64,000 nucleotides of DNA from Eutreptiella sp. 'Long Island Sound 2002' (GCA_964036045.1 OZ038379.1:24304001-24368000), one strand, 5' to 3'. Positions 11,790 to 35,410 are shown, counted from the first letter of the stretch. The notes: generated from the letters alone by a model not told the origin. Translations and numbers: made by a program.

Positions 11790-12500
11790 CAGTGATCAAG
11801 TGGCCGCGCGACATGGCCCTGGTTGAAGTGGTATACCTTTCTCGCCGCACTAACATAGTCAACCAAAACATTGTTCCCGATCCGGTCAGCAAGAACATGA
11901 ATCAAGGATACAACTCCTGCATACATGATTGGAGGGCAATGATCAAACACACTCGCCACACGAGGCACCACATCATCTAGATGGAAATGCCAAAACCACG
12001 CCCATTGTGTACTTCAGCGCTGTGTGGGTCTACTCGTTGACCTTGCCGGTCCAGCTGCAGCGAAAATGCACTATGTCCGCACCATATGCTGCGCACTTTC
12101 GTACAATACGCAATGGCACGACCACACACGCGGTGCCGCCCATGTGGAGGAATGTTGTGAGGCCTTGCCCGCAAAATTGCGGGCACGGTGTAAGCAACAC
12201 CCCGACAAGCACATGGCGGATGAGGCTGGTGACCTTTTCCGCACCATGCCCCCCCGTCAGCGGGTACGTGCAACGGAGTCCCTCTCCGAAAGTGTGTGTG
12301 TAGAGGTGCGGGACAGCGTATGGGCACTAATGCGTGGTGCAGGATGGGAGTAGCATCCCACTGCGCGATGGTCCTCGGGTCCAGTCAGTGGCACACAACA
12401 TATGCGTTGCCCAAAAAGGGAACCGGGGGTACGCTAATTGTTGCGTTTATGAATTCTATTCTAAGCTCCGCGATGATGCCATAGATTACATACGGCAACT
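11790..12500 (+). pseudogene. Possible Ulp1-like (clan CE) protease remnant
   Basis: Fragments NHAHCVL..GLLVDL..KMHYV and VAQKGNRGYANCCVY loosely fit H...D...Q..C spacing. Heavily degraded. Confidence 0.22.
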
Positions 12501-13540
12501 TATCTCACTCAGGCCACCTGTGAACCGCCGTGAGGCCCGGGCATTTGTAGAAACAGTTGGGTCCATACCAGTTGCAATGGAGCACATTGTTCCGTCAGTG
12601 CCCCCAGTGCCATATGCAATTTTTATTTATAATTTGCCCCCCCCCGCCCCCCCAAGGATGGTGTACCTGTGATCCGGGCCAAGGATGCCGTAGATGTTGA
12701 CGCCCTCTCTGATGGCCTTGTACCTGCTGTGCTCAGTGAGGAGTTGCGTGAATTTGACCTGATAGATTTAGACTGAGCAGGAGGGGCGTGGCAATGTCCC
12801 CCCCCCCCCTAGACAGCCCAATAAGCATTTTGATGTGTACTCCCCTATTATTGCGTTCCCCCAAATGTCTGTGCTCTGCGGAGCCCAGCTTTGTCGGAGA
12901 CTGAGTTTTGAGGGGTTGTATGACTGGTTCTTGTTGCTCTAGGCCCTCTCACGATTGCCCAATATGTACCCACATTTGGTCATCTTGTGTTTCTTTCTCG
13001 GGGCCGGGCCAGTCCTAGAGCATGCCATCACCATGCTTTGATCTGTGCACACATCTCCCTATTTTCGTAATGTACTGTGCACCTGCTGCGTCAGCCTGCG
13101 TGACCCTAGAAGAGGTGTGCCTGGCACTGCTTCACTGGTATGCCGTTACGATGTCTGACGGTAAATTGCCATAGGCAGGTTTGGCTCTGTTGTTGCAGGC
13201 CATTTGGACATGCCCAATTTTACTGTTACTCTGTACCTGTGTCAACGAGGGACGTTTTGGTGGGCGTGTTTGATGGTGTGACCATCAGCGTGCACTGGAC
13301 ATCGTATTGGAGATGCCTCTGCAGTGATTAGGTGTTTTGGAGACAACTTTGCCTATTTCAACCTTTGTGGGTGCCGAATTGAATACATTGTTCCGGCTAA
13401 TTTGCTATCCAAATTCGCCGTGGCTAATTTGCTGTCCAAATTCGCCGTAAGCCATCTTTGATGCTTGGAACTGTGTGATTGTTGTGCTGTTTTTACTGCT
13501 GTCATTTGTCCTGTAAAGTCCGTGTGTTTCTAAGACATGT

Positions 13541-14767
13541 GTGACAAACGGCATTGCCATGGATGGCAACCTTGGTGAGACACTAGCGATGGAAACATGG
13601 GAAGCCGAGAAAGTGGGCGCACTGCAGCCAGAGCCCTCCATGGGGGAAGCTGTACAAGGCAGCAATGTTGCTGGGGCCAGCCAAGCTAGTCAATCCCCCT
13701 CTCAAATGGGGAACAAGTCTCGTGTCACACGGAAAATGGGTAGTATCAAGGACTCGACAAGGGTACCGGCCATTGCAAATTACGTGGAGTTGCGCCGGAC
13801 CAAGGCGAGTCACAAGGAATTGAAGATTGACAGGACCATGGAATATGGGCAATCACGGCTCATCGATTGGGACCACGTGGCAGAGGTAAAGAAGGACCTA
13901 CTTGCAAACCCCCCTGATGGCCGACTGCGGCTTCTGGTCTAGGACAACAAAGGTATGGGAATGTTGCAACGCAATTCGATTAGCGTAACGGGCTACTTTG
14001 TCTGCCCTGTGTGATGTGCCATGCTATTTTATTTGGTGGGAGCCCTGTGGGCGATCGGAGGCCAACACGGCGTTGCGGCATGTGATTAAATTTGCAAGGA
14101 TGTGACAGCAAGGATGGGCGAGGTCGAGGACTGGATGAACAATTTTGAGGTGCGCATCATCAAGTGTGATACATCCGTTGAAATTTCGGGAAAGCTGGCC
14201 ACACAACACAATAGGGCGCAACAAAGTGGACGTGAGAGTAGTGTACCCCAACTGTTGAACAATTTCCTACAACTAGCGGCCGAGGACACGGGGTGCAAGA
14301 ACACAGTTGTCACCTTGATGTGCGAGGCAATCGTGGAGGCGGGGCTGACCGCGACGTCCGGCAACACGGAGACAATCGTCAAGCAAATGAGGCCAACAGC
14401 CCATATGGTCCTAACGTGGGGTACCACTTTCACGGACGCACTCACCAAGATGGTGGAGCGCAAGCAGGTGATTGCCCTTTTTACAATGCGGTGGTTCGCT
14501 GGCATGCAACCCGAGAATTTGTGGCGCGTATTCAACTACATGGCCTCGCCGAAGAGTACAATACGAGGCTTCCAGAAACTGTCGAAGGAGCTCCGCGCTT
14601 GGGAATTTTGGTGGTTTCACTTTGGTCATCCCGGCATGCCGGTGAGCGCATCCACCCTTCAAGACGTATGCTATTGCCTTGTAAGCATGTTCGTTTTGTT
14701 GCGAGACATAGCAATGCAACACCGATTCAATGGGTCGCTGCGAGGGAGGCTAGATGAAGTGCAGTGA
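13541..14767 (+). pseudogene. ParB/sulfiredoxin-like domain protein (paralog 1), spliced pseudogene
   Basis: GQSRLIDWDHVAEVKKDLLANPP...[phase-1 GT-AG intron 13953-14042]...WAIGGQHGVAAC (14048-14068)...LATQHNRAQQ. In-frame stops at 13940 and 14087. Confidence 0.7.
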
Positions 14768-14804
14768 CCAATTTCAGTATGACACCAAGCAATTTTACTT
14801 TGCT

Positions 14805-15296
14805 GGGCTCTGCAAAGCCCAGGATCCCATGGGATGCAAAACCACTGGATCTATAGAGACACTGTGCTTCTTGGAACTTCCGCAACTTGACTGATGTTGA
14901 CTGGTGCAACCTTGCGTGATGATGTCCAAGGACCCCCCCGGCCCCCTAGACACCCCCTAATTCTCCATTTTGTTCATGATGGGCTCTGTAGAGCCTAGAT
15001 CAAGCATATTACCAATTGGAGAGTACTGGGCTCTGCATAGCCTAGGATCCCATGGGATGCAAATTCACTGGATCTACAGATACGCTGTGCATGTTGGAAC
15101 TTCCGCAACTTCACTAATGTTGACTGGTGCAACCTTGCCTGATGATGTCCAAGGACCCAAACACCCCCTAATTCTCCATTTTGTTCATGCTGGGCTTTGC
15201 AGAGCCCAAATCAAGCACATTGACCGATTTAAGCCGTCATATTACCAATTGGAGAGTACTGGGCTCTGCAGAGCCCAGGATCCCATGGGATGCAAA
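14805..15296 (+). repeat. ~225-bp tandem repeat (about 2.2 copies) rich in palindromes
   Basis: Units start at 14805, 15028 and 15261 with GGGCTCTGCA.AGCC.AGGATCCCATGGGATGCAAA. Confidence 0.85.
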
Positions 15297-15379
15297 TTTA
15301 TGTTGTGCCAAATCACTGTGACTTGGTGGATCGCTAGAACCTGTTGCAACGTGCTCTCCTCTATGGCCCTTGTGCACAC

Positions 15380-16357
15380 AGGTACTAAGACTGAAGTGGC
15401 TCGCATCTCAAAGAAGTTTAGTCACCGTCTGGCGAATTTTGGTGCATTGCAGGGGAGCTAGGAGTACAGCGAGTCCACGCCGTGGCCACTGCTCGAGGCA
15501 GTGTTGAAGGCAGGTTTGTGGGTCAGCGATCAGGAAGATGTCGAAGCACATTGCAGACTGCTTGGGAGACCAGTGTCGAACCCGGCTGTTGAAGTGTCTG
15601 GTGGGGAGGTGGCAAAGGTCAATGTCGGCAAGGGCCCGGAATGTGGAGAATTTTGGGTGTAAGATGGTCAGTGACCGTAGTGCTCAATGAGATCAAAGTG
15701 CCGAAGTACAATCTTGTCGTCGTCGAAGTCCCCTGGCGAGGAGGGTGCAGTTCTAGTGCGCAAATCGTGCGTGTGCTTTGTCAAGGGGTACTTGGCGCCT
15801 TTCATGGACACCATGGGGATGTGGTCGCTGTGCAACAACACTTATGTTTGCAATTGGAAGATTTGTACCCAACAGCTTTGTGCATGGCTGTCTGCCATCT
15901 AGGAAGCAGAGAAGAACCGTATTTGTTCGAGCAGTCAACTCTGTTGCTTGTGAAGACCCATGATCTGGGCCGTGCCGTGCCGCACTTCCTCACGCAAAAG
16001 TTGTTCACTGAAGGTCTATGGCTGGGTTTGGCTATCCTGTGGTGGTTGGTGAATTTGCCGGAGGACCCCAACGACGACACGGACGACATGCACATGGATG
16101 TTGATGCAGCGCGTTGCCTGTGGGCACTGTACTACGGCTGCCGCCCCGACCTGATGAGTATGGGCTGTATCCACTTGCCTGTCCCGTTGAATTGCACATG
16201 GGGTGTATTATCTGAAGGTCCCTACAATGCAACTGATGTGGTGAACCTGGTGAAGACAAGCGTCCGGAAAGGGGACATGGAGGAAGATGTTGAGTGGCGG
16301 AGTGATGCATTGGGCAAGCACGGGCCATCCGCTGTTCCAACAGCAGGAGTCCCCTGA
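15380..16357 (+). pseudogene. Degraded coding segment downstream of ParB-1, possibly N6/N4 DNA-methyltransferase-like
   Basis: EFWV*DG [frameshift] VLNEIKVPKYNLVVVEVPW resembles the GD...DLIxTDPP(Y/W) start of beta-class MTases. No motif I was found. Confidence 0.3.
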
Positions 16358-17561
16358 CCAGGCAGGTGACGCGGACAATAGTGAGGAAGAAGTCGCTGGT
16401 GTCTACCCGCTGGTTGTAACCTCGGTTGTGGGGGGCGCATGGGGGGGGGGGAGTGTGGGTGGAACACCCAGGGGAAAAAGAGATGTTTCGGGTTGAGAGG
16501 CATCTGTTGTATGCCTCTCATGCTGCAGCAGTGACCCATTGGGAGTAGCAGAAGGCTGCAGCTGGGGGTAAGAAGGCCGCCAAGGCCAAAAAGAAGCCTA
16601 ACCCGAAACCGGACGCCGACCCGCCGGCTGAGCCGGCCCCCAAGCCAGTCAAGCCTGAACCCAAGCGTGAGGACCTCCTACAGCACATATAAAGGTGTTT
16701 ACAATTTGCGTGCTTTGTTTTCCGTGTGTCTGCGCTTCATACTTGTCGACTAGTATGTATGGTGCTTCAATGCCTTGTCTATGACCGGTGCTATGGTGGT
16801 CTTTCGCATATGTAGGGACTGCTATTTTGGGGCGGGGGGGGGGGGGGGCATACACTACGCCGCTTATGGTATCCATTACCACATTGGTGGTCTGGCGTGT
16901 TTATCATTATCGTAATTCATGGGTGCTTTGTGTTGTGTCTATTGATCTGGTGCAGAGCCCAACCAGTAGGAATTCCCTACTTTAGGCCCTGTTACGACTT
17001 GTTTGCCTATACATTGTTGTGTTGGTACACATCCCTGTAATATTACCCTTGTTTTTAGTGAATTTCCTTGTTTTGGGCTGTGTAGAGCACAACTTGTCAA
17101 AAATGCTTGTTTGCACGCTCCTTTCACACAGGTGTTGTTATTTGTTGTTCTAGGGTACACCTTCTTCACAGGTGGTCGATGTATGGTCATCATTGGCATC
17201 ACAATACGACGATTGCTAAGACGACCGCGCCACGTGCCGTTCACAAATACGTGCTCCATTTGTCATATCAGACCGCGAGACATAGTTTTATGGCGGTGCT
17301 GGTCCATTTTCCGTATTTCATACCTCCAAAATGGGAAACAACAGCGGCTGCGCTCATATGTCGTGGGGGCACAAAAATGCTGCTTTTTTGCTGCTTCGCA
17401 CCCCTGAATCGCGCGTCACCGCTCCTCCCCATTCACCCTGGCTGGGAACAGCCCCTCCATTATGCTTGGCTATGCAGTAGAGAGACTAGGCTCTGTGCAC
17501 AACATCAATTTTTTTTTGAAAAAAACGATAGGGGGCACTATGCGCCTCCTAAGACCAGGCC

Positions 17562-18599
17562 ATGTATGTTGTGCTTCAATTGGCTAACAACTCTTCGGCA
17601 CCAGTCTTACCGAAGTTATGCGACATCACCATGTACTACGGCTACTTGAAAATGTTGTACAGCTACTGGATGCAGCCACTCCCACTGTGCCATGTGTATG
17701 GCTCCGTTTCTCCCTTGTTCGGTATCCGGCGTCCATATAAGTACTATGTTGATCACACGTACGATGCTTTCCTATTCATGGTGGCACTTGAAAACGAAGG
17801 GTTCCTTCAAAACCCAGCGGAAGGACAACTGTATGCATGTCCTTCCCTTATTGTTAAGGAGCGTCTTATTTTCGCTATATACCTCTCCATACCAGCTATA
17901 CGTGCTCACTTACGTTCTATTGCTGGCAGTAAAACACTTAAAGATAAGTTGTTAGCAGGGCTATACCGTCTTGTTTGCCAATATGCCTCAGCCTTACTTT
18001 GTCTTTGCATTATGGTGCGTGATTGTTCTTACCGTACACCACTTACGGGTGAAGCAGCCAGGCGGTGCTTGCAGGTTTCTCTTTACTTGATTCAGAAGTT
18101 GAACCCACAGCACAGAGACGGTGGTTACAAGCGAGCTTTGCACTTAGCGCTACGAATGTGGTACCCATACCACTCTTCCCTTCCTGCCTGTGCCTTCGTG
18201 GAGGAGAAGGGGAAGGACCTGTTGTCCCGTTTGGCAAGGGCAGTGGCCGAAGACCCAAGCATTACCAGCAGTGATGACTACCACGACGTTTTTGTTACGT
18301 GATGCCACCAGCAGTCCGGTACTCGGAAGCCCCTAACAAGCCCCCACATAACCCGCGATTCAGTACGAGCTGTGAGCATGCATCTTGCACGGTTGCTAGC
18401 ATGCATTCCTGCCGGTATTGTGCCGGTTGTAAAAAAGATGGCTGCTCGGCCACGGCCGGGTGCCCGGGCTGCCAATACCCTGCAGGCTACTATGGAGTGG
18501 CCGGAGGACCCTGGCTTTCCACCTTGTTTCAACACCCAGGTTGCGGATGCAACCTTGCTGTATGGTGCATACCATTCGCTGGATGTGTTGTTTTTTTAG
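17562..18599 (+). pseudogene. Putative DDE-type (RNase H-fold, helical insert) DNA transposase remnant
   Basis: 246-aa ORF plus continuation. LFGI(RR)PYK is two transitions from GIWHPYK; also MVRDC, YKRALHLAL and AFVEEKGxxLLSRL near a possible catalytic Glu. Confidence 0.4.
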
Positions 18600-19658
18600 T
18601 GAGACAAAGGTAGAAAGTCACCCTAGGTTTGATGCAGCAAGGGCGCATCTACCTCGCGATGTGGCCGAGGTACCTGTGCACCATGCGTCCTGCAAGTTCA
18701 AGCAGCGGTTCATAAACTTCTGTGCCCATTTTGGGTATGCAAGCCCACACCCCTTCCCCGCTGACGGGGATGCTCTGGGGGATCCGGCCCCCCCGGACGC
18801 ACCGGCAGGGGGGGGGTCCCTGTCCCCCCCCCCCCCCCCAAGGTTGTACCCGGGCTTGTTGCGGCAGAGCCTGCACCACGGAACCCCGTGGGTCCTATTG
18901 TGGATGGTGATGATGCCACCAGCACTAATGCATCATCATCCGATGTATCGAGCTCGACGTCTGCTATTGTGAACAATGACAGCTCGGACGGGGTCCACAG
19001 TGTGACTGTTATCGATTAGCCCCACGGTTTTATTGCCAACAATAGAAGACCATGACCGTGCTTGTAAATACATGGCATGCATATGCGGTGGCAGTGTGCT
19101 TTGCTTTCGTGTGTTATGTGCATGGAGTTTGCAGAGTGTTTTACTGTACAGTAGAAGGTACTGTGGGTAACTGGCATGTACACCAATGTCTGTTGCGTCG
19201 TGCGACATCCCTTTCGTACAACACCCGTTCAGCATGGAGTGATTATGTGTTCCGCAGAAAGTGACTGCCTGATGTTCTGCTGTGAGCAATACAATGTACT
19301 GCAAATGAGCAAGGTATAAAGGGATTTCCGGCTCTGAGATGTAGGTTCTTGCCTGGGTTATGAGTCTTGTGAACCGTGTTTCAGCGAAACGCTGCAGGCC
19401 TCTTTTGCTGCACAAGCAATAAGGACTGTGACATTTCAATTCTTGGAAGCAGCGCCTAGGGTTGCCGTGTGTGGATACACGTGATGCACGGAAGTCTGAA
19501 TGTGCAGGGTCTAGCCACGTAGGGGAGAGGCCAAGTGACTGCATGAAGCAATGGGCCAAAACATAGTCTGTACAGTGCCAAATTTGCCTGTAACTCAGGC
19601 CATTTCAGCCTTTTTTTGATTTCTTTGCGTATCTATCCATGGGACCACTTGTAGTGAA

Positions 19659-21095
19659 ATGGTTTTTGATGATGGCAGTGCTCGCGGGGGTGCGCAGGAT
19701 ACAGGGCCGCCTGCAGGAGCAGCCCCGCCCTCAGAGACTGCCCTTGCCCCAACCGTTCCGTTGCTTGATCCTGCCGCGGACCTCTCCGACGACGACATAG
19801 AGGAAGTGCGCATCGGTGCACCACCGGACCCTGGCAGTGGCACATGATAGGACCTGGATGCGGAGCTAGCAGGCTATGACTATGAGGAGGAGGAGGAGGA
19901 GGAGATAGACAGTGGCGGTGAAGAGACAGTGGACGCAACACAACATTGGACGGACGAAGAGGCCAAAGCAGCGTTGACAGAGGTCCGCAAATGGATTGCA
20001 CGGCAGGGGTACGTACCACTAAAGCAACTAGGTTGGTGTGGAGCGCGATGCCGTGGACATTCACGTCCGTTGAGCAGCAGGCGACTGGACAAGATCAGGG
20101 CAAGCTTGCGACTCAGAGGCCTGGTGATGGAGGTGCTGACGTACTTACTTGACCTGCAAGGTATTTGCCACCGCAGTGCAGCAATGTCGTTTGCCTTTTA
20201 CTGCTGACCGTAGAAATCATGTCCGATCTGTGCACTGTTGATGGGAGGCAGCCAGCAAGTGGCTGCTACCAATTTTTTTTGGAGACAATAAAAATATGTG
20301 CTTTGTTTGTCCACAGACTCCATGTACTTCCCTAGTGCGGGTCAGCACATTTCCACCGGCGTACGCGAGATCTTCAACCAGAAGACGGCACCAGTGGCAC
20401 AAGGGGGGGTAGGGTTTGATGAAGCGGACCTACCGAAGCCCTACACACAGACACAGGCCATGGTGATGAAACCAGACACCCCCACAGCTGTGCTGAGGAT
20501 GGCCGGAGGCCTCCACCAGTGAGCCCAACGGAGTCATGAGGAGACCACCTTCAGCGAGATCATTGGAAGCGTGGCAGAACTGTGCCAGCAGCAAAGAGGA
20601 GGGAAGAGCTAGAAAAAGGTGACACTCGATGGAGATGAGATGTGGAGCATCATTCAAGATTTGGGTTTGGAGTACCAGGATTATGAGACACCAGAAAAAA
20701 CGGTATGTTCTACCACTAGCAATAGAAAGTTTCATGGTACCCTATGTGTTGTATGCACACCGCGGCGATGTGACCGTCGGTATTGAGCCAGAAACATGCA
20801 TTACCATTATTGTTGTCACAGCAAGAGCGGGCAGTAACGCAGTGGCGGGGAGTCGCAAACTTTGTTGGCATGATGTATGGCTATCCCGATCTTGTGCCGG
20901 CAATCGAAAAATTCTACGAGTCAAGGGTCCTGGGTCCAGCACCGTTCAAAGAGTCCGCTGGGAACATGTAGTACTGGTACTGCAAGGAGTTCATGGAATG
21001 GTTGACAAATCCGTTGACGAAAAAGGTCACGGTGAGCTCGGTGAATTGTAAATTGAAGGAGTTGCGCCAGCTGCAGGGCATCTACACCCATGTAT
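19659..21095 (+). pseudogene. ParB/sulfiredoxin-like domain protein (paralog 2), spliced pseudogene
   Basis: Acidic N-terminus, GHSRPLSSRRLDKIRASL...[phase-1 GT-AG intron 20161-20316]...YFPSAGQHISTG...GGLHQ*AQRSHEE. In-frame stops. Confidence 0.65.
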
Positions 21096-21334
21096 ACCAC
21101 CTAGACTTGCCGATTCATGACTCGCAACGTATGTCATGCATGTTCTGTGGGCAATCTACTGTCTTGTACACCGGTTTTATTGCCGGCAGTAGAACTGAGT
21201 TCCGAGTGATTTTTCGGACCATTTCGATGCGACAGGCTTGGTGCATACAAATGCAGGTGCCTTTTACTGCTGGCACTAGAACACTGTGTCCAATTGGAAC
21301 CCTGTTGTCTTATTTTCTTAGTCACCGAGAGCAC

Positions 21335-22569
21335 AGTGAAACGTTTGATGGCTTTGGACAACCGGTTGTGGAGTTGGGGACTGCAAGGACGAGCAGCAGC
21401 ACTTTGGAGAGTGGAACGATTGCAGGTGAAGGCAAAGGATTTACTGAAGGCCAAGTTCTGGACACAAGCAGCACCAGGGGTTGAGGAAGAGTCTGTTGGC
21501 AGACATGACTACACAAGGTACTGTGAGCACGGATGCCGCACAGGATGGAGTGGTCGAGGTGGTGGTGAACAACAAGATGCAGACAGTGCGATGTTGCAAG
21601 GACAAGATGGGAATTGTGAGTGTTGCCCACCTGGTAAACATTGAGTTTGGGCTTGAGGAACCGATGGACACAATCCCTGTGGTGCCAGGTGGTAAGTTGG
21701 TGGTTGATGGGACCCCCTGCATTGTGTATGGCCCGAACGCAAGGGAGCAGGCAGCATCCCTACAAGAGAGGCAACCTGTACTGGCAATGTGGCAGAAGAC
21801 TGAGATTGCGGTGTAAAGTACAGGGGAAACGGGCATGGTTGTGAAGGCCAGTCGGACTAAGTTCACATGCAGTGTTCTGTATAATGTGTTGCTCCAACCC
21901 AAGAAATTCATCTTGCATCCTCCATACATGGTTGTGAATTACCCATGGCGCACCTCAATGTTCGGGTGGTATGAACTTCTGGTGCCATCGATGAATATGC
22001 CAGCAGATCCAGCACAACCCATGCTGTTGGTGTTTCCTGCGTCCTGCCGCTCTGCACAACAAATTTTGAAGACAGTGTGAGCCCTTTTGGTGTTTTTTGT
22101 GCGATGGACCATCCGCTTCTGGGATTGCACGGGCCTGCCACCCAAAAGCATGCAGAAGGAACTGTCGGAGGAGGTGAGCACCACGCAAGGCCTGCCACCC
22201 AAAAGCATGCAGAAGGAACTGTCGGAGGAGGTGAGCACCACGCAAAACACATTGCCGCCAAACTTTGAAGGTGAGTTGTCGTTGTTCGCCAATGGCACCC
22301 CCGTGACCCTGGCTGCGCCGAAGGCCCTTGACAAGCGCTTCGAGGAGACAGCGAAACAGGCAAAGAAAATAGACAAGCAGGTGATGAAGCAGGAGGCCAA
22401 GCAGGAGGCCAAGCAAGCTGCCAGGGCAGCCAGTACGCAACCAGTATCCACGGGGGGGGGGGGTTTACTGCCAGCAGTAGAACACCAGCATGCATCAGAC
22501 TATGTGATTACTTCTTCTTCCCCTTACCCCCGGTCTTCTCCAAAAACTTCTGCATGTCCTATGCAGTAG
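21335..22569 (+). pseudogene. Degraded coding segments continuing ParB-2 locus, ending in Lys/Glu/Ala-rich coil
   Basis: Successive protein-like frames (21294, 21481, 21835, 22087) separated by stops and frameshifts. Confidence 0.35.
22132..22245 (+). repeat. Exact 57-bp tandem duplication (19 codons, in frame)
   Basis: GGCCTGCCACCCAAAAGC...CACCACGCAA twice (GLPPKSMQKELSEEVSTTQ x2). Confidence 0.95.
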
Positions 22570-24169
22570 GGATCTTGGTGGCTGCAGAGGTGGAAGTGTT
22601 GGAGCGTGTTGCCGGGCCTGTCTATGCTTTCTCTTGCGTATTAACGGGAGGCCTTGGCCTCTTCAACCCGCGGGTCTTTCGCTGAACCTCTCCACTTGCA
22701 GCTGTGGCCTCTAGAACAGGAGCAGACTGGGAGGCACTGGCAGACGGCGAGGCTGCAGGGCTGGCCTTGGACTGTGATGCCTTACTCTTTGGAGTACCAG
22801 CAGCAACTGGCCCTGTCGTGTTGTGCCCAGGGTTCTCATCCGGGGCAGGCAAGAGAAAGGGGCTCTCCATCAGACGTGACGGTTGGGATGATGCGCTGGT
22901 CCTCTTGCCGGCTGCCTGCTTGGCACAGCGATGGGTTGGTGCCCTGTGTGTGGGGCAAACAGCGTTGCTTTGCATTGGGCCCTTGCTGCCTGTCAGTGTG
23001 CAGCTGTGCTCTATTGCTGGTAGTAAAAGAAAATTTGTATGTGCCTGTAACTTCTGTTACCCGGTTTGCAACACCCTGCACGCGCACTGCCCATGATGTC
23101 CTGGACCTTCCGGGCTTATTTCTGACACTGTAACAGTATTGTTCTGGTCAGTTCTACTGCTGGTAGTAGTACCCTCATATTGCTATCCTTCAGCATATGT
23201 GTTCACTTATAAGCCACACAGTGTGCCGCTTGCACCACCAGCGAGATGCAGCTGGCAGACCTGCTTAGCAACATGCAGTCCCACTACAATGGAGACAGAA
23301 AGGAGGCGAATGCCCGGGCGTGGGGTATATAGGATTGGCCCAGCAGCCGGCCCAAGGTGGTGCTGTTCCTTGGAGTGCTCGGAATGTCTGTTCCGATGAA
23401 GGCAGTGCTGCTGTCGGTGAGCAAGATGGTCAGGAGCCAGGAGGAAGCATTTGGACATGGAAGGGGGGGTGTTGCAATGCCAAGGTGTGGTTGAGTGTGT
23501 GGGTTTTGTGTTTGGGCGCGATTGCCGGATGGTGGTGTTTAGTGCCATGTGCTGGAGGCTACGGGCCTGTAGTACTTCCCTTCGGGATGTTATTTTGATG
23601 TGTGTGTGGGGTGGGGGGACTCAGTTGTACAGCGGCTTGAGGATTGCATTCGACAATTGTGATGCCATTGGCTTTTGGTGTTGCCTTGTTAGGGAAACGG
23701 AACCACCATGACTGAGTTCTGATTTTTGCCCATTTCGTGCGTGCTTGCCGTTCCTTGCTTGCCGCTGAAAAAGGGTAAGCCCCACCCTACACCCTAAATA
23801 GGGTTATACAACCTGACTGGTCTCACTAGCTCGGTGACCCTAACTGAACCCATAGCAACGGGGGGTTTGAGGGATGCTTTGCGGGACAGCTGTTGATGAA
23901 AAATTTTGCAGTTTGGTCTGTCTGATGACTGCTATACAATCATAGTGAGTGCGTTCGGCTTTACGAACGTGAACGGTGCGATTGGATTTGGATGGACTCC
24001 TCCACCCAACTCCACCTCCGTTTTTCTCATTGTCCCATGATCCACCCCTTTGTTTGTTTTCCTTGGTTACAAAGGAACATGAATTGGTTGCTATTGCAGC
24101 AGTCTGGGAACCCGTGAAACAGATTCCCCCTCCTGCCATCCTCCTTTTGCTGCCTCTGCCTGCATCCCA

Positions 24170-25749: not shown

Positions 25750-26944
25750 CCCTATGGTAGCAGTAGGAGGACGGAACGACTGCCCAGAGGGGAAGAACCC
25801 AAAGCGCAAACGGGCCCAACCGAGCGGCCCCACGATAGGCATCGGGACACGGCAGCGACAAAGCCCCCGTGAATGGGAGCGGCGGTAAAGCGGCTCAGAA
25901 ACAGCGGGAAGGCCGACCGCGGAGCCCGGCAGCAGTCGGGCATGCGGAGAAGCGCGAGACGGCGACCGAGAGCGCCCTGCTCGCGACGATAGCGGAGCGG
26001 CAGGGCACCATACGAGACCTGCGGTTGGAGATAGCGGTCCTTCGGAAGCGCGAATCGGCGAAGGAGAAAGCGGCGCCGGCATCGTAGCGCCAGAGGGAGA
26101 CACGGCACGGCACCGGTGGCGACCGCGATGCCACACAGCCCACTCAGCTGGCACAGCCTATGACCGGGCCCAGTTATGCGTAGGTGGCACAAACGAGGGT
26201 GCGGACCAAGGTCCCGCGAGGAAGGAAGTACCGACGACAGGTATCCCACTCCAACTTGTGGCGGAAGAGCTCCAGAGGACGGCGGAGAAAGGGGAATAAG
26301 GCGCAGTCCTACCTGCCTGCCCGTACAGGGACAGGGACCTCGCAGACACCGGCATGGTGCAGCTAGCTCTGGTAGCGCCCCCGTCGCAGTGGCCCCCAAC
26401 ACTCAAAAAGGTGTTGCTGGTAGGCAAGAACACGGAGGACTTGTGGGCTGCAGCCTCGGAAGCGCCCACGACCCACAAAGGACTCCAGGAAATTGCGGCT
26501 ATCGTGAACGTGGGACAACCTGGTGCGGTGCCGGCCATCACAGGCCTGCTGAAACTGACAGGCTGGAGCCGAGACGACGTAGCCCTGACAGAGGCTGCCG
26601 GCGGAACTGCTGAGGGTGGCGGAACGCACGGGACGGTGGCCCGAACGAGTGGCGGAGGGCTTCACTTCATTGGTGCCCAAAGGGGAAGGGGAAGGCAACC
26701 CCATGAAGCTCAGACCGCTAACAGTGTTGTTGACGATATACAGGATCTGGCAGGGCTGCGGATGGAGGATGCCCTGCAATGGCAAGAGCAGTGGATCCAC
26801 CGGGAGTCATACGGCTTCAGGCCGCACAAGGGAGCCATGGATGCGGCCACGGTGACGCTGCTGGTGGAGCTGGCGCAAGTGCCGGACCCCCGCTGGTGGG
26901 GGCGGGAACAGATTATACCAAATGTTTCGACTTACTACCGCAGG
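25750..26944 (+). mobile_element. Internally deleted non-LTR retrotransposon (LINE copy A)
   Basis: Coiled-coil ORF1-like pieces, then RT N-terminal blocks GRWP...SLVPK...LRPLTVL...YRIW, YGFRP..GAMD and DYTKCFDLLPQ, then truncated. Confidence 0.8.
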
Positions 26945-29900
26945 GGGGCAGCTGGGCCTGCCCAGCCGCCCCCCCCCCCCCCCCACCGCCGAGCAAGCAA
27001 TGATCGCATTGGTACAACGCCAAATTGCGTCCCTCGAGGGCGTAATCAACAGCCTCCGCCGTGAGCTGGTGGCGTCAAGGGGCGAAGTAGCCCCAGCCCG
27101 GTCCCCGGCGACCACAGGGGCGCTGGCCGCGATGATGACGATTGCGACGACGACGAAAACAGCGGCGGCCGCCAAGAAAGCCGCCCCCACGACCCGGGCG
27201 GCGCCCGGCTGGCAGTTGGCGGGGGGGGGGGGACCCAGCAGGCGTCCCCGGAACGCCCAAGCACAACAAGCTGCGGCTTCGCCCCAGCGCTCCCCCCCCC
27301 CCCCCTCCCCAGTCTCCATGCGTGTGGACGGGGAAAGGTAGCGGCGAGCGGAGCTTGGAGCACCGCGATGGGTGCATTTGCCGGTCGGGTCATCTCCCCG
27401 CTCACCCCTTTTGCCTCTTGGCAGCCTGGTTGGGCGCACGAGGACATCAAAGTAGCCTGGGTCAACATCGTCCTCGAGGGGTTGGGGGGTGTCGAGGACG
27501 GCTCTGCCCCCCCCCCCCCCCCCCCACGGGCGAGCCTAGGCGGCGTGAGCTACACCTCGGCGACGCGGTTTGCGGCCCGGGGATCCCGACCGGGTGCGGT
27601 GCGGGTGGTGGTGACCGCTAGCCATGCTAAAGCAGCGCCTCGGCCTATATAGCCCACAGCGGCTGCCCTCTGGGCCCTCTTGCCTTCGATGACGGCGGTG
27701 CAGCCGCACCGCCTTTACCAGGGTGAGTCCCGGGACACGGTCCGGGCTTGGGGAATCACCCAAATCACGCCGGGGCGCCACCCGGCGGAGTGGAAACAAC
27801 CCTCCCAGGAGGGGGCCTTGCGGTGCGTGGCCCTGGGCCCGCCTTGCGGCCGCGGCCGCCATCGCGGCACATGACGGCGTCTAGCGAGTCACAGCGCCAA
27901 TGCACGTCCAAGGGGGCAGCAAAGCGGCCCCCACAGTGGCGACCTTGCTTCAGGCCCTGCCGCTCGAAGACCAGCCTCGCGGTGCCGGGCTCGTCCCTGC
28001 AAGGTGTGGTTTCGACCGAGCGCCAACCTGGGAGACAGCCAGCCCGGAGGTGGTGGACCCCGCTCCGCCGGGGCACGTACTGCAGCTCGTCTGGGAGCGT
28101 CTCCCGGAGGATGACAAGCGGGAGGCGGCCGAGCTCACAGATGTGGACCCCGTGCCGTTGTACCCCTGCCGTCCACGGTCCGGGTTGTCTGTGTCGTGGA
28201 CCCGGCAGTTCTGGCGGACGCCGACTTGCGCCGGCTCCATGTGGGTTCTTTCGGCAAGGACCACGCTTGGCGGCACATCAAGCCGCTAATGGGGGCGGAC
28301 TTGCCTCACCCCCCGCCCATGCAGTTGGCGGTCAGGGGGTCGATGGTCGAGGTCTCTGCCGACCTCCGGACAGAGGTGGCGCCGCTGGTTCTCCGCGCCA
28401 GTGGCAAAGCCCGGGGGGTCCACTTCCGGCTGTGGATAGTCACGGGCTCCGCCTGCCAACATCCCACGTATGTGTTGTGCTACAAGCAGCCACCGGAGCG
28501 CCGCATGCCCTCCCCGGAGGTCTGGATGACCTTCGCCGAGGATCAGGAGCACCGGACGCTATTCGCGGAATTCGTGGACGGGGGTGCCCCCGGCAACGCG
28601 GGGGTACACATTTGGGGGACCAAGCCGGCGAGCCCCGCGGTGGTGGCGCACATCGCCAGCCTACTGGGCGCGCTGGCCTGGTCACAGACGACCTCTGTGC
28701 GGGTTCGTGGCTACCCGCCACAACTGGGTCTGGCGGTGGATGAGTATGCGCAGCTCTGGCGCCACGCCGAAGAGGATTTTGGGTTGGAGGTGAACTTTCG
28801 CGTCCACCGCTGCACCCAGTTGGCCCACAACACCCACCACCGGCCGGTTTTTTGACCTGGAGCTGGAGGGGGTGCCTGAGGATTGGCAAGGAGTCCGGCT
28901 GGGGGCGCTCGACATCCGCCTGCCCGACCGCCTCCGGGAGCGGACAACCCGCAGCTCCCGCCGGGGGCACTACCAGCCCGTGGGCCCGAGGGCCCGAATT
29001 ACGCGCCCGGAGGGGTCGGGGGGCTACTGCGGTTGAGGCCCCGGACCACACGGGGGACCTGGCACCGCGGAGTCGGCGGCAGGCGACGTGGATGAGGACG
29101 ACGAGGACATTCTTCAATGTTCTTAGCCCTCTACATCCCGACCCTCTGCGTGTGTATGGCGGCTTGCCCGCGGTGGTTGACAGGGGCCCGAATGGAGACC
29201 CGCGGGGGAACGCCAGCGCGACTACGGCCCTTGGCCCCTTACCGGTCACGCCCGGGGTTGGTGGAGGTGTAATGGCGGCGGCTCCAGCACTGGCGCCCCC
29301 CCCTTGGGGCGGCGCTAGTGACCGGACTCCCTCCCCGGCAGTAGGGTGTCTATATGCCCATAGCCTAGGACGGCGCCCCGGGGCGAGGCGATGACCCTGA
29401 GTCCCCTCCGGGGGGGGGGGGGGGGGGGGCACCCGGGCGGTGGCAAGGGGCCCCACACCGGGGTGGGGCGGTGGTGGTATGGCAGGGGCACAACCGCCGC
29501 GGCACTGCGGCTGCCCCTCGCGCCGAGCGTGACCGGGAACGTGCCAAGGGGCTCCTCCGCTCCCCCCCCCCCCTTGGTTGGGATCGTGTCAGCACACCAG
29601 GTGGACAACGAGCGCTGCTTAACGTGCAAGCAACTGGAGTGGGATGTGCAACGCTTGTGGGCGGTAGCCTGCCCACGGAGACCAACGCAGGCGCCAGTGG
29701 CGCCTAGGCAAGAGGACGTGGAGAGGGCGGCACCATGAGCAGGCTCCCTGGCACCCCACCGGCTGCGCCTAGGGCTGGTTGTTAGTGGTAATGGCGGTGT
29801 TCCCAGCACTGGTGGACACCCCAATGGGACGGGCTCAGGAACCGGACCCTCTATGGGGCATGAGGGTGTCTATACGCCCACAGCCCACGAGGGCGCCCTG

Positions 29901-31458
29901 CGGCGAGGTGATGGCCTTGAGTCCCTCCTTGGGGGGGGGGGGGGGTCGCACCTGGGCGGTACCAAGGGCCCCACTTCAGGGTGTGGCCGGTGGCGGGATG
30001 GCACGGGACCCGGCCGCCGGAGCGCTGCGGCTATCCCTCACATTGGGCGTAGCTAGGGGCGTGTCAGGGAGCCCCCCCCCCCCCCCCCGGAAAGGGCAGT
30101 GGCCGCGGTCCGGGCCGACGGGGTGCACCGCCTAACCAGGGAATGGCTGGAAGGGAGCATGGGGCAGTTGGGTGCAACCCCCCACCACCATCCCCCCCCC
30201 CCCCCTGCCCCCTACACTGGCCACCCTGCGGCCCGCCACCGGTTTCTTTTGCCCATGGCACGGGGACCACGTGGTCGGGGCCGAGGGCGAGGGTGCAGGC
30301 ACCCCGGCCCGCCCTCCTCACTCCCCTGGAACTGGCGGCGGCACCACGGCTTCGCCCTGTTGCGGTGGTGGTACGGCCAGGCTGCCCGGGTGTTCCCCGC
30401 CCTCCACCAGCGACAAGGGTGGGCTAGCACCACCTGTGCCCTCGCCCCCCTTGAAGGGCTATGCCCTGGGGTCGTGCGCCTGTAGGACATCCTTGCCGGG
30501 GCGCGGACGGCCCCGTCTTCGCTGTCCGCCGTCCAGGGCCCCGCTGGCCCCGAGTTCGGGACCAAGGGGGCCATCGTTGGCCAGGCGCTGCAATGGAGGT
30601 ACCCTAGCGTCCTCTTTGCGCGCGCCCCCGCCCCGACGACTAGAGCGCCCGTCTTTTCTACACGTGGCGATGGTACTTGGCGCCACTGTGGCAGGACGTG
30701 ACAGGCGCGCCGATGTGGTGGCCAACCCGCAATGGCCGGGTGGAGCGTTGGTAGCCCCCCGACTGTTGGCACCTCCGCCCGCCCCGCCGCCTCACCCCCT
30801 TCCAAGGGGAGACGGCAGGCCCCATGCTGTGGCGGTGGATTGGTGGGGCCGGGTGTGGGACAATGACCCTGCCCGCCAGCCCCCCCCCCCCCCCGACCCT
30901 GACCCCTCGGCAACCTGGCAGGAGGTGGCCGCCGAGGTGCACGCCCTCCTCCCCCGGCTCACCGACGTCTGCTGGGCCGCCCTGCTGGAGCCGGGAGAGG
31001 TGTGGGCCACCTCCCAGTGGCCAAGCGTCCTCCGCCGCGTCCCCCCCGGCCCTCATTGGGACCTCTTGCACGAGGTTGCCCAAGAGGCCGATCGCCTCAC
31101 CGAGGGATGGGAGCACGGTCGCCCCCCGCGCACCCTACCCCCCCCCCCCCGCCTGTCGCCGGCAGACCGCCCCCTCCTCCCACGCCGCCCCCCGCCCCCC
31201 GCCTCCCGGCACGCCTACCTTGGGCCGGTGACCTCTGCCGCCTACCTGGCCTCGGTGCAGCGGGCTGGTCTAGCCCAGGAGCAACGGCTGACCTGCAGGC
31301 ATGCCATGCTGCCCTCCCTCTGACCCCTCCCCTCACGCCCTTTGGCCGCCGGCAGTTGAGTTTGTGGGTGGGCTGTGTACTCCCCCCCCCCCCCCGCTGG
31401 GGTGACCGTGGCTCTGCCCCCCCCCCCCTTGATAGGATGGCGATGGGACCCCCCCCCC

Positions 31459-31503
31459 CTCCTGCTGCTGCGTTGCGGTGGCGTACACCCCCACCCAGGG
31501 CCA
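31459..31503 (+). other. 2A/StopGo-like motif LLLLRCGGVHPHPGP directly upstream of APE
   Basis: Direct translation. Degenerate relative to the D(V/I)ExNPGP consensus; GGC is one base from GAC (Asp). Confidence 0.55.
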
Positions 31504-32280
31504 CTGCGCGTGGCGCAAGCCAATGTCACGTCCCTGCACATGCAGTGGCACACGGTCGCTGAGTGGCCAGCGGACGTGGTACTGCTCTCCAAGACCCGCC
31601 TCACGGTGGTCGCGTAGCAAGTGATGCGTGCCCAGGCCGCGGCCTTGGGGCGGCAAACTTTCTGGGGCGCCCCGGGGGCGGGGGGGGGGGGGGGGGGGGC
31701 ATCTGGGATGCGCCGGCCGGGGGGCTGGGGATCTTGGTGCGCCAGGGCATTCCCGCAAGACACGTCCTCCCCCCCAAAGGGGTGCCCCGGAGCGAGGCAG
31801 ACTCGCTCACCCCGGCCATGTGGCACTCTACCCGATGGTGCCAATTCCTGGTTGGCCTGGGGCGGGGATCGGAGTCTCTGCATGCCCAGGCGGCCTACAG
31901 CGTCTCCTCGCAGCCCGCCCTAAATCGGCCCTTCTAGGACCAAGCCACGTAGTACGTGGCGTGTCACGGGGCGGCCCCTGAGCTGTTCGGGGGGGGGGGG
32001 GGGACTTCGACGTTGACCGCCTGCTGCGCCCCCCCCCCCCCCATCCGTCCTGACGTCCCTCCCGGTCCAACGGCTGGTGGACGCGGATCTTGAGCTGGCG
32101 TCCGCCTTTGGGCGGGACCCCCTGTGCTCGTATCAGGGCCCGGAGGGTACGCGCCCCTCGCGCATCGATGGGATGCTGGTCGACACGCGGCTTGCGGCGC
32201 TGCTCCACGCAGCGGAACTGCTCCCGCGCGGGGCCATCCCGGGCCACACCCTGGTGCGATTCGACTTGCACCTGAAGGGT
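31504..32280 (+). pseudogene. Apurinic-like endonuclease (APE/EEP) domain of LINE B
   Basis: ANVTSL, VVLLS(K)TRL, GGLGILVR, GDFDV, SRIDGMLV and PGHTLVRF across frameshifts. Confidence 0.8.
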
Positions 32281-33230
32281 GCATCTCAGCGGGTGGTGAA
32301 GTTCATCCGCCCCAAGCCCGTTGAGGTGGCGCCGTGTGGGGAACGTGAGCAGCTCCTCCTCGTGCACCGCCTCCCCGACCCTCTGGAGGCCAGCTGGCGA
32401 GCGGCCCTATCCACGGGTGACGTGGACCAGGCCTGGGCCTTCGGGCCCACGGCCGGCAGAGGAAACCCTCCTCGCCCTCTCCTGCCCGGATATCGCCCCG
32501 GACTCCCTTCTGACCGGGGCCGCCTTGCCGCTGGCCCCACCGCACCTGCGCCGGGGCAGGGGGACCGACCAGCTGCTTCGTGAGGTGCGCATGTGCCCAA
32601 AGCAGCGCAGGGACAACGGGGGGCCGCTCACCTGCCCAGGTGGCTCCGGGAGGTCCACTGCTGCTTGGAGCGACTGGCGTACGGCGTGGGCGCCATACTG
32701 CGTAGGGTGCAACAGGCCTGGGCAGCGTTCCGGCGCTGCCTTGGCAAACTCCGCGCACTGGGCTCGGAGTATGCCGGCCTGGAACCGGGCGGCACACACC
32801 GGCTGGCCTCGCTGGAGTCGCTGCGCCGCTTCCGTACGGCGCTAGCTGGCAAGGTTCGGGCCACGCTGCGGGCAGAGGACGAGGGCCGGCTTCGCGAATG
32901 GCGCGCCTGGTTGGAGGAGGGCTGGACCTCCGACCATGGGGCAGTGTACCAGTGGCTCAAGGATGAGTCCTACGCCCCGCCGGTCACCTTCCTCTCCAGG
33001 CCGGATGGCACAGCCACGGCCGACTTGGCGGAAATGGATGGCCTCTTGCAGGATGCCTAGCGGCCAATAAACTGCAAGAATGCGGCAGACCCCGAGCCAG
33101 ATCCCACGGCCTTCCTCCGCCGGTATGGGCACCATGTTCGGCGAGTCCACATGATTGCCTCGCGGCTGGATGGCTCCCGCCTGCGCAAGGGGCTCTCCCG
33201 CATGAAGCCCTCGGCACTGGGACTGGACGG

Positions 33231-33626
33231 GTGGAGCCTGGCTCCCTCCCCGACATGCTGCTAGGTTGGCTGGCAGACCTCCTGCGTGAAGTGGAGCGCC
33301 TGGGCAGGTGGCCCGCCCGCCTGGCCAAGGGCTACACCGCCCTCATCCCCAAGGAGGGCCCGCCAGGACCCCTGAACACCCGCCCGCTCACGGTCCTGTC
33401 CATGGTCTACAGGCTGTGGGCGGGCGTGCGCCTGGCGGATGCCATCGCGTGGCAGGAGTCCTAGGCCCACCCAGCGGCCTTTGGCTTCTGCCCGGCCAGA
33501 AGCGCTCTGGACGGGGCGGCGGTGATGCAAGTCCTTTTGGAACTGTGTCGCCTCCGGGGGTGGGCAGTGGCGGGAATGACCATCAACTATGTCAAGTGTT
33601 TCCATCTCATGCCCCAGGCGGTCATA
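33231..33626 (+). pseudogene. RT N-terminal blocks of LINE B
   Basis: GRWP..LAKGYTALIPK..RPLTVLSMVYRLW, FGFCPARSA and NYVKCFHLMPQ. Confidence 0.88.
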
Positions 33627-35410
33627 TGGGTCAAATTGCCCAAAAATGCTCAAATACGTGTGTGGGGGGGCGGGGTCGATTGTTTCTTCATCCTTGGCGT
33701 TTTGGTCGGAAATCGCCCCCGAAAACGCTTCCGATATTTTTTCATCCCTAGGGATTTCGGCTCCCTCCCGGCTTCGGCCGGGGTTTCGGTCGGGGTTTCG
33801 GTCGGGGTTTCGGTCGGAAAAACGCTTCCGATATTTTCGCATCCCTAGGGATTCCAGGAGCGATTGCCTGGCATGTCGGCTGGAAAATTTACAGGTCGAT
33901 CGTCAGCAACGCTGGGAATCATGCCAAGATTTTCGGTCCCAAAATAAAAATTCTACGCTTTGCGTTTGAGCGACATGTGTTGTCAAAAAGTGAACCGAAA
34001 AAAGAATGAGCTTTGGCTCATTCCTTTGGCCGAACATGGAAATACAGCCTGGTATTTTGCAATTCTTCCGAAAGAATGAGCCATGGCTCATTATTTCGAC
34101 AAAACATCATTGGTCACGCCTACATAGCACATACACATGTACAAGTAATGTTGGGGAAACAGGGGCTTAACAAATACATGGGCAAAATCATGGAAACCGT
34201 TCAACAACATGCCATTTTGGAAGGGCAGAGCAAGGCAACGCATGGGAAGGTAGGGCATGGGATGGCAGGGCATGGCAGAGTAGGGCAATGAAGATGAGGC
34301 AGGCAGAGCAGGGAAGGCATGGTAGAGCAAGGTTGGCAGAGGGTGCAAGGCATGGTAGAGCAGAGCAGAGTAGGGCAAGGCATGGCTGAGCGGGGCAAGG
34401 CAGAGCGGGGCAGGAGGCCTATGCACATGGGGTTACATGATCCCAGGACGGTTCATCTCGTCCTAGCTTCCTGTAGGGTATGTGTCCGACACGACTATCC
34501 TCCTATATCGTCCTATAGAAGAAGGCCAACATGACTAGCACCAACATGACATCCTTGTACATGCATATGCGCTATGGCGGGGTTGAAAAGTAGTAGTTTT
34601 TCGAAAGAATTTGCCATGGCTCATTTTCTCAGAAGAACCAACAAATACCACGTGGTATTTCAAGGTTGCGTGAAAAGAATTAGCCATGGGTCATTCTTTT
34701 CGAAGAACTCCTGACTGCCATGCTGTAATTCTATGTTTGGACCAAAGAATGTGCCAGACAGACATCAAGATAAGGAGCCAAAGGATGACAGTGGTAAGGC
34801 GAAGCTGAGGGCTGGGGCGGCCCCCTTCTTGGGTTGCGTCAGGACTGTTGCTGGTAAAAAGTGAGTTGTACCGTGTGTGATTGTTGAATTTAAGCGTATT
34901 TATCTTCCGGTTCGGCTCGAAGAATGAGCCAAAACTCATTCTTTTTTCGGTTTACCGTTTTTAGCCTACCGTATACACGACGCGATACTGTATGGTTTAG
35001 TACTACTGTCATGTCGTATTGCTGCCATGTGTGCCCTGCATGCTGTGTTCTTCCACCCACATGTTTTGTAGATGTGCTGCTTGCTGAACAGCACACACAA
35101 TTATTGGCCAGGGTTTGTCATGTGTAGTAGTGGGGAAACAAGTTTGTGACAAATATGCCCCAAAACTCCTCGGAAAAGGTTTAAAAGCGTGCCATTCCGG
35201 CGTCTCATCTGCCTATTCTTGCACTGCCCCCCCTGCTCAACCCTCCCCGAAAAACACATTTCCCCTGTTTTTTCGGGGGTCCGGGACCCCCCCCCCCCCC
35301 CGAAGTACTGCAGCCAAGTCAAAATGCCCCCTTTTTTGTGGGTTTACAAAACCAGGTGTTTATGACACTTGCCAGAAAATGGGGCGGTCGGTCAGGGCCG
35401 CCCCATGCCC
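33627..35410. mobile_element. ~1.8-kb lower-GC non-coding insert interrupting LINE B RT
   Basis: Abrupt composition change between RT block 3 and block 4. Contains internal direct repeats, (GGGGTTTCGGTC)3 and five hairpin motifs. No clean TSD or TIR found. Confidence 0.55.
34223..34414. repeat. Degenerate pentamer simple repeat (GGCAN/AGGCA)
   Basis: Runs of GGCAG, GGCAT, GGCAA and GAGCA. Confidence 0.8.

Follow-up and report, generated by a model that had tools for sequence, protein, structure and literature searches.

Dead copies of a ParB-like accessory gene in two adjacent terminal inverted repeat transposons of Eutreptiella sp., with a proposed role in recognition of the element's own palindromes

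We analysed a 64,000-nt stretch of DNA from Eutreptiella sp. 'Long Island Sound 2002' (GCA_964036045.1, OZ038379.1:24304001-24368000), hereafter the window, which holds two remnants (copy 1 and copy 2) of a gene for a protein with a predicted ParB/sulfiredoxin-like N-terminal domain. In the reading that we consider probable, both are dead accessory-gene copies of two related terminal inverted repeat (TIR) transposon families, and the ParB-like protein is proposed to recognise palindromes of its own element. A preliminary description, made from the sequence of the window alone, had presented the remnants as two paralogous, intron-bearing ParB/sulfiredoxin-like genes that duplicated within one eukaryotic mobile block flanking a transposase-like open reading frame (ORF), and as a candidate undescribed system. 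The coordinates of all features are collected in Table 1.

Two transposon families carrying the gene

To define the family of element 1, which carries copy 1, we aligned five full-length young copies (95-98% mutually identical) from the 2.28-Gb genome examined, yielding a full element of 11.3 kb with 33-bp TIRs (CTTAGGAGGCCCATAGTGCCCCCTATCGTTTT in the five full copies), CTTAGG..CCTAAG termini and 5-bp target-site duplications (TSDs) around five of the five copies. With its inverted ends, TSDs and many dispersed copies, family 1 is a TIR (cut-and-paste) DNA transposon. Across the genome, the exons of copy 1 had 1465 and 1166 candidate matches (for exon 1, at least 150 genomic matches among the 1166 candidates), the best of which were mostly intact frames of 266 and 185 aa. 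The preliminary description had called for a search for intact copies in the genome; most young copies have open frames, and the copies examined lie inside elements. The window's own element 1 is an old copy, ~80% identical to the full copies by blastn. It lacks the first ~110 bp including the 5' TIR, only the 3' TIR being found in the window, and has two internal deletions, one of ~3.3 kb that includes the N-terminal half of the transposase and one of ~1.4 kb between 16395 and 16671.

Copy 2 is carried by element 2, which belongs to a family of about 100 copies that are ~85% identical over at least 3.2 kb. In both elements a large putative transposase is followed by the ParB-like gene, and the linkage to a transposase-like ORF pointed out in the preliminary description is thereby seen in both families. 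Because a TIR of element 1 closes it at 17553 and each gene sits in its own repeat family, these are two distantly related transposons side by side: the loci are two adjacent transposons of separate families, and not the outcome of a duplication within one block.

Structure, decay and constraint of the gene

The motifs and both phase-1 GT-AG intervals (13953-14042 and 20161-20316) stood where the preliminary description had put them. In copy 1, the frame of exon 1 ends ...YGQSRLIDWDHVAEVKKDLLANPPDGRLRLLV(TAG)DNK before the 90-nt intron 1 and continues after it as ALWAIGGQHGVAACD(TAA)ICKD...QHNRAQQSGRE (ICKD...LATQHNRAQQSGRE). In copy 2, it reads ...RGHSRPLSSRRLDKIRASLRLRGLVMEVLTYLLDLQ before the 156-nt intron and DSMYFPSAGQH...GGLHQ(TGA)AQRSHEE after it. 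With two in-frame stops in exons 1 and 2 plus a broken exon 3 in copy 1, and at least four in-frame stops in copy 2, both window copies are pseudogenes, dead copies of a transposon accessory gene. Counting back from the His of GQH, the codon that intron 1 splits is found 8 residues earlier in copy 1 and 10 residues earlier in copy 2. Of the intron position that the two copies had been said to share, the phase (1), the placement just before GxH and the equivalence were retained, but the two positions agree within two codons and are not identical.

We then followed intron 1 through 22 locus entries of family 1, several of which show the same copy. The 90-nt length and the GT..AG borders were kept in 22 of the 22, and an in-frame stop was present inside the intron in 20 of the 22, with the flanking exons staying open. 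Relatives in which the gene is unsplit run through the intron 1 site without the 30-residue insert. Both patterns support the earlier statement that the gene is intron-bearing. From a GTGAGC donor after exon 2 and an acceptor that precedes an open frame of 489 aa, young copies would have a second intron of ~1.4 kb and a third exon, this exon 3 being the 489-aa frame. The gene is longer than the span first described and runs on into this third exon, at ~15390-16354 in copy 1. On an environmental contig, the ORF that comes after the ParB-like ORF of a relative (P0137) aligns colinearly with exon 3 at 23% identity, and the whole gene product in family 1 comes to about 850 aa, encoded by an intron-bearing gene 3' of a 734-aa putative transposase.

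Exons were compared separately, the joined readings being the natural open frames L024:1258-2145 (through the intron) and L039:3006-4106. Between a young subfamily and the old copy of the window, the ratio of nonsynonymous to synonymous substitution rates (dN/dS) was 0.22, 0.27 and 0.23 for exons 1, 2 and 3 respectively. We take this to be a real, constrained gene because dN/dS is low (0.22-0.27) in all three exons and the frames are open in most young copies. For the C-terminal domain, a TET/JBP-type oxygenase was considered and rejected, the HxD-like 'HGD' of family 1 not being conserved in relative L049. An EVP[WR] motif, which reads EVPW in the copy of the window and EVPR in the young ones, has a weak resemblance by eye to a degenerate MT-A70/DPPW type.

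Homology and predicted fold

BLASTP found no similarity between copies 1 and 2. Using hhalign, exon 2 of copy 1 aligned with exon 2 of copy 2 over 89 columns (probability 64%, E 6.5e-5), and exon 1 of copy 2 aligned with the N-terminal profile of the family (probability 82%, E 1.1e-5), so the homology of the two copies is visible with profiles only. The paralogy claimed for them at first is upheld in this sense, but it is invisible to BLASTP and holds between two pseudogenes, not two genes. To gather relatives, we ran a profile of both exon 2 sets against 1.84 billion representative proteins (E ≤ 1e-3), resulting in 94 relatives, the majority of them from environmental assemblies. Word-index searches of proteins yielded nothing beyond same-genome or near-identical ORFs, and using the family alignment as a query added none. 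Most profile matches are short ORFs that start at or just before GGQH, many of them ending in '..VC', which is the look expected of exon 2 when ORFs are predicted from genomic DNA and the frame continues across a GTNTGY donor. Both halves stand in a single frame in a few relatives (P0137, P0087, P0110, P0140 and P0114); the N-terminal half of such unsplit relatives is 27-34% identical to exon 1 of copy 1. The pattern of the family can be written as P.eqL ... GQSR.ld..hV ... L..nPP ... v.vW ... y.[LI]GGQH[IGL]..A ... v.a.vLk..TP..v.R.aAG.HQ..Q, and the aligned motif [LI]GGQH[IGL]xxA is present in nearly all of 57 members, with G and H more than 90% conserved.

We modelled residues 140-314 of P0137 with AlphaFold2 from a 57-row alignment (predicted local distance difference test, pLDDT, 89.3; predicted template modelling score, pTM, 0.81). 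The top Foldseek matches in the PDB were ParB, Noc, KorB, PadC, sulfiredoxin (Srx) and serine kinase (SerK), with E-values down to 4e-5 and a probability of 1.00, and SbnI was found among the enzyme matches besides Srx and SerK. Structural alignment with VIA-align placed the model on M. xanthus ParB with Z 10.4 and a root-mean-square deviation (rmsd) of 2.5 Å over 94 residues at 26% identity. A total of 32 chains of the ParB/Srx superfamily scored Z 6.8-10.4, after which scores dropped to 3.5. These results support the prediction that the N-terminal ~125 residues of the family adopt a ParB/sulfiredoxin fold, and the ParB/Srx assignment of the preliminary description, which had named this structural check, is borne out at the level of the model. 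Three helices follow the fold in the model; KorB and the pNOB8 ParB N-terminal chain align over 124-146 residues, whereas the alignments of the other matches stop at model residue 111-126. The nearest structure to the model in the ESM atlas belongs to an unnamed, mollusc-dominated eukaryotic cluster (TM-score 0.70) and the next ones carry PF02195. Judging from the ESM-atlas neighbours of this model and of the putative transposase, the same pairing of two genes may exist in molluscs or basidiomycetes.

Palindromes and the proposed role of the protein

The 11.3-kb element carries 24 copies of the 16-bp palindrome GGGCTCTGCAGAGCCC (allowing up to two mismatches; 13 are perfect), mostly paired ~70 bp apart and all in non-coding parts of the element. 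They occur in both subterminal regions (element positions 109, 488, 558, 10722 and 10852), flanking the large ORF on either side, 3' of exon 3 and in the predicted intron 2, where nine of the 24 form part of a ~251-bp tandem array. In the window, the tandem array in the predicted intron 2 spans 14803-15298 in ~250-bp units that carry GGGCTCTGCAGAGCCC and ATCCCATGGGAT. We found no such palindrome in 8.7 kb of flanking DNA, against 24 in the element, and seven in the window, all within element 1, against an expectation of 0.1. Their positions are kept in all copies, the divergent subfamily L042 included. We propose that the ParB-like protein would recognise the DNA of its own element through these parS-like palindromes, and that its uncharacterised C-terminal domain of ~300 aa might then help transposition or shield the element from silencing. 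The precedents for this proposal are TnpA of En/Spm, which binds subterminal repeats, and the suggestion made for the red-algal protein PAG3.

A number of results weigh against this proposal. As to the fold, Pfam searches of every exon piece, ORF and relative gave no match (PF02195, ParB_N, included), NCBIfam and PADLOC searches of 57 family members gave only noise, and a PDB profile search with the ParB-like family gave no sequence match; the model itself is that of an environmental relative 24-34% identical to the broken protein of the window, and not of the latter. The GxRRxR motif of the CTP (cytidine triphosphate) pocket of ParB is replaced by GGQH[I/G/L] in the family and its arginines are absent; a CTP-switch mechanism is doubtful because these are the ParB arginines that hold CTP. 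As to the C-terminal domain, a Pfam search of exon 3 and of the C-terminal ORFs of relatives found nothing, 2-oxoglutarate (2OG) oxygenase included, and the AlphaFold2 model of the exon 3 domain reached a pLDDT of 33 on an 8-row alignment. As to splicing, the splice joint was absent from eight short contigs of one RNA run (an estuary metatranscriptome), one estuary RNA contig contains 15 nt of the 3' end of intron 1, and three other sequence runs holding the gene behave like DNA. The neighbouring ORF is called a transposase on account of where it lies, how large and conserved it is, and language-model features that point to DUF6589, whose own Pfam model gave no match. Finally, the repeated palindrome was not found in the sampled part of element 2, and those of element 1 could be sites of the transposase.

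This last point leads to an account that we regard as possible but somewhat unlikely, in which the ParB-like protein exists but the palindromes are bound by the transposase, as are the subterminal repeats of many TIR elements, and the protein acts elsewhere, as a nucleoside triphosphate (NTP)-dependent enzyme, as a nuclease, or on chromatin through its C-terminal domain. Palindromes do occur in the two subterminal regions, the places in which a transposase would be expected to bind, no array of them is seen in the sampled part of element 2, and many proteins of the ParB/Srx fold are enzymes and not DNA clamps, Srx, SerK and SbnI being among the matches to our model. However, the densest array, with nine copies, is inside the ParB-like gene and not at the ends, inverted-repeat arrays and ParB-domain accessory genes have been reported together across red-algal families, and, over 124-146 residues, the DNA-binding regions of KorB and pNOB8 ParB can be aligned with the helices that come after the fold.

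That the gene is a mere passenger, captured from the host by a transposon and useless to the element, appears improbable to us. Captured genes of unknown use are frequent in giant algal transposons (PMC12477816), but here the gene, with an equivalent intron, holds the same place in two families that share just 28% identity between their transposases, dN/dS between subfamilies is that of a constrained gene, and every copy examined sits inside an element.

We give very little credence to two paralogues arising by duplication within one eukaryotic mobile block and forming an undescribed system, as first described: both genes are within 7 kb on the same strand and each is 3' of a transposase-like ORF, yet element 1 closes with its own TIR, the two belong to separate genome-wide repeat families (more than 1000 against about 100 matches), their proteins are too diverged for BLASTP, and comparable systems, namely ParB-domain accessory proteins by inverted-repeat arrays, have already been published (bioRxiv 10.1101/2025.02.11.637652; PMC12477816; PMC4738411). 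A chance resemblance, in which the R...GxH pattern would not mark a ParB/Srx domain, is scarcely believable in spite of the absence of Pfam, NCBIfam, PADLOC and PDB sequence matches, given a high-confidence model to which ParB/Srx chains, and nothing else, align above Z 3.5, and given that exons 1 and 2 of the window both align in register with the modelled relative.

The putative transposase

In many intact copies of family 1, the putative transposase is a 734-aa open frame. Diverged relatives were found in public assemblies, P0051 at 34% identity and P0050 at 46% identity, and the genome has a subfamily with 701-aa open frames, the same length as P0051 (for example C11:7063761-7065668 and C3:162385500-162387407 in G000). 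Pfam hmmscan of three diverged members gave no match, the models of DUF6589 (PF20231), Plavaka and KDZ included, a genome-wide scan with the DUF6589 Pfam model was equally negative, and a PDB profile search with the putative transposase gave nothing. In the ESM atlas, DUF6589 proteins made up 27 of the 30 and 29 of the 30 nearest clusters for two members that are 34% identical to each other (scores 0.94-0.95), these neighbour clusters being from basidiomycetes and molluscs. We treat this likeness to DUF6589 as a lead and not as membership. The motifs WxDNW, LLxDxN and PKLxVIEK are conserved among members, and that they serve as in a DDE/RNase-H-like transposase is a guess from sequence.

Two known superfamilies do not fit the carrier. 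Plavaka/EnSpm elements have a 2-3-bp TSD and CA..TG-type termini, and Zisupton elements an 8-bp TSD (PMC12730594). Family 1 has a 5-bp TSD, CTTAGG..CCTAAG ends and a transposase without a Pfam match, which does not fit Plavaka/EnSpm, and its TSD of 5 bp against 8 bp does not agree with Zisupton. A tentative and rather unlikely extension is that the 734-aa protein defines an unclassified eukaryotic cut-and-paste superfamily (DUF6589-like, with a 5-bp TSD and relatives possibly in molluscs and basidiomycetes), the members of which would carry a ParB-parS-like module of their own, that is, a ParB-fold protein and dozens of cognate palindromes across the element, to mark, bridge or protect transposon DNA. 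If true, such a module in transposons would be a eukaryotic reuse of the principle of bacterial centromere binding.

Comparison with known systems

PAG3 (Plavaka accessory gene 3) of giant Plavaka transposons in Bostrychia moritziana has an N-terminal ParB-like and a putative 2OG oxygenase domain, and homologues are cited in transposons of Chondrus (Chondrus crispus) (bioRxiv 10.1101/2025.02.11.637652). Like PAG3, the gene described here is an accessory gene in a high-copy DNA transposon, encodes an N-terminal ParB-like domain and then a larger C-terminal domain, and has tandem inverted-repeat arrays by it, here the ~251-bp array inside the predicted intron 2; self-binding of the element has been proposed for PAG3. 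Unlike for PAG3, no 2OG-oxygenase domain was detected here with Pfam, partners such as PAG1 and PAG2 were not seen, the carrier lies outside Plavaka/EnSpm and the host is reportedly a euglenid, not a red alga; PAG3 was compared by description and not by sequence.

A survey of Ectocarpus reported a ParB-like/DNA-methyltransferase accessory protein in a Sola1 element, Sola1-1_Ec32 (PMC12477816), and fusions of ParB-helix-turn-helix (HTH) with Dam were noted in chlorophytes and chytrids in 2015 (PMC4738411). In these, as in our family, a large eukaryotic protein that is transposon-borne or lineage-specific begins with a prokaryote-type ParB-like DNA-binding domain, but no methyltransferase domain is detectable here. 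Compared with Sola1-1_Ec32, the gene here is on the strand of the transposase and the transposon superfamily differs.

With the ParB, Noc and KorB clamps, the family shares the predicted fold (Z 10.4, rmsd 2.5 Å), the helices after which may correspond to the DNA-binding regions of KorB and pNOB8 ParB, and with ParB/parS it shares 16-bp palindromic sites in multiple copies on the DNA encoding the protein. It differs in having GGQH[I/G/L] in place of GxRRxR, no ParA partner and no recognised C-terminal dimerisation domain, and in being eukaryotic, intron-bearing and transposon-borne. The strand-turn-helix signature GGQH also resembles GGCH(R) of sulfiredoxin (FGGCHR) and DGQH(R) of DndB (DGQHR). 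However, Gln stands where Srx has its catalytic Cys, and compared with DndB the final Arg is absent in most members, there is no NCBIfam or PADLOC match, and the one solved chain from a DndBCDE-DndI defence-system entry among the matches (9jfl_B) scored only Z 2.9. TnpA of En/Spm (CACTA) and VANC of VANDAL offer a possible analogy as second proteins of TIR transposons that bind repeats of their own element and assemble the ends or counter silencing; their folds are unrelated to this family and the analogy is functional.

The kind of gene is thus a known one; the present family stands apart in its host lineage, in its carrier transposon, in a divergence strong enough to leave no Pfam match, and in the C-terminal domain, which in sequence searches is neither a recognisable oxygenase nor a recognisable methyltransferase. 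Surveys of the ParB-CTPase fold have used Pfam thresholds, among them one published in PNAS in 2025, which gave sulfiredoxin as the commonest eukaryotic representative, tested other ParB-fold proteins for binding of CTP, ATP and GTP, and never mentioned transposons (PMC12704722). The family described here is invisible to Pfam, yet a single genome has more than 1000 copies of the gene, and public assemblies add about 90 representative sequences, which were mostly environmental among those checked. To the red, brown and green lineages, it adds a fourth algal lineage, reportedly the euglenids, with a transposon-borne ParB-like protein by palindrome arrays. Given this recurrence across algal lineages, self-recognition of transposon DNA by ParB-like proteins looks like a repeated strategy, for which the 16-bp site and the young, intact copies provide a concrete system for testing.

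Feature coordinates and minor observations

Table 1. Features of the two elements, in positions of the window.
Feature	Position	Strand	Remarks
Element 1	11651 (approx.)..17553	+	Decayed copy of the 11.3-kb TIR element; blastn against full-length copies
Transposase ORF remnant, element 1	12000..12758	+	Residues 399-663 of the 663-aa P0034; tblastn 58% identity, E 1e-77
Exon 1, copy 1	13541..13952	+	GQSR motif; conserved part 13700-13952; in-frame TAG 13940-13942
Intron 1, copy 1	13953..14042	+	90 nt, GT..AG, phase 1
Exon 2, copy 1	14043..14641	+	GGQH and QHNRAQ motifs; in-frame TAA 14087-14089; GTGAGC donor at 14642
Predicted intron 2, copy 1	14642..15389	+	From donor, acceptor and frame
Exon 3, copy 1	15390 (approx.)..16354	+	C-terminal domain; TAG 15459-15461, frame change before 15641
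3' terminal inverted repeat, element 1	17521..17553	+	Matches TIRs defined on full copies
Element 2	17554..23238 (end approx.)	+	5'-truncated, decayed copy of a second, distantly related family
Putative transposase fragment, element 2	17562..18302	+	BLASTP 28% identity, E 6e-18 to the large ORF of element 1; tblastn
Exon 1, copy 2	19659..20160	+	G[HQ]SR motif; two stops at 19845-19850
Intron 1, copy 2	20161..20316	+	156 nt, GT..AG, phase 1
Exon 2, copy 2	20317..20702	+	AGQH and LHQ(R)AQRS; TGA 20520-20522, TAG 20610-20612; GTATGT donor at 20703

In family 1, a proline-rich open frame of 344 aa (L043:8265-9299) lies in the 5' part of a full-length element, upstream of the transposase, and had no match in a Pfam search. 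The full-length copy c9 sits in an interstitial (CCCTAA)n telomere-like array with the TSD TAGGG (L043:7220-7260, L037:8590-8654). A 120-bp insertion at L037:4725-4844 is private to that element copy and has C/G tracts at its borders; the DNA-like runs and the estuary RNA contigs contain it in great abundance, with loose ends on both sides, and it is probably a miniature inverted-repeat transposable element (MITE) of a GGGGG..CCCCC Harbinger-type family. In the window, a 27-bp unit is duplicated in tandem at 13395-13448, just 5' of exon 1 of copy 1.

Within element 2, a segment of ~480 bp (22437-22917) has the opposite orientation to that in more than 25 other family members. A third family, 33-36% identical to exon 2 of copy 2, has many intact 231-aa open frames (for example C3:177306786-177306968, C7:33072611-33072793 and C8:19894048-19894230 in G000). 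At least 12 matches to exons 1-2 of family 1 are spaced ~1965 bp apart on the minus strand at G000:C4:106231520-106254064, and at least five matches to exon 2 of family 2 are spaced ~1560 bp apart at G000:C6:90039619-90046051; from this regular spacing, truncated element fragments with ParB-like exons have been amplified as tandem arrays. Elsewhere in the window, blocks at 26001-34000 and 42001-44000 have a G+C content of 66-72%, against ~52% in the rest.

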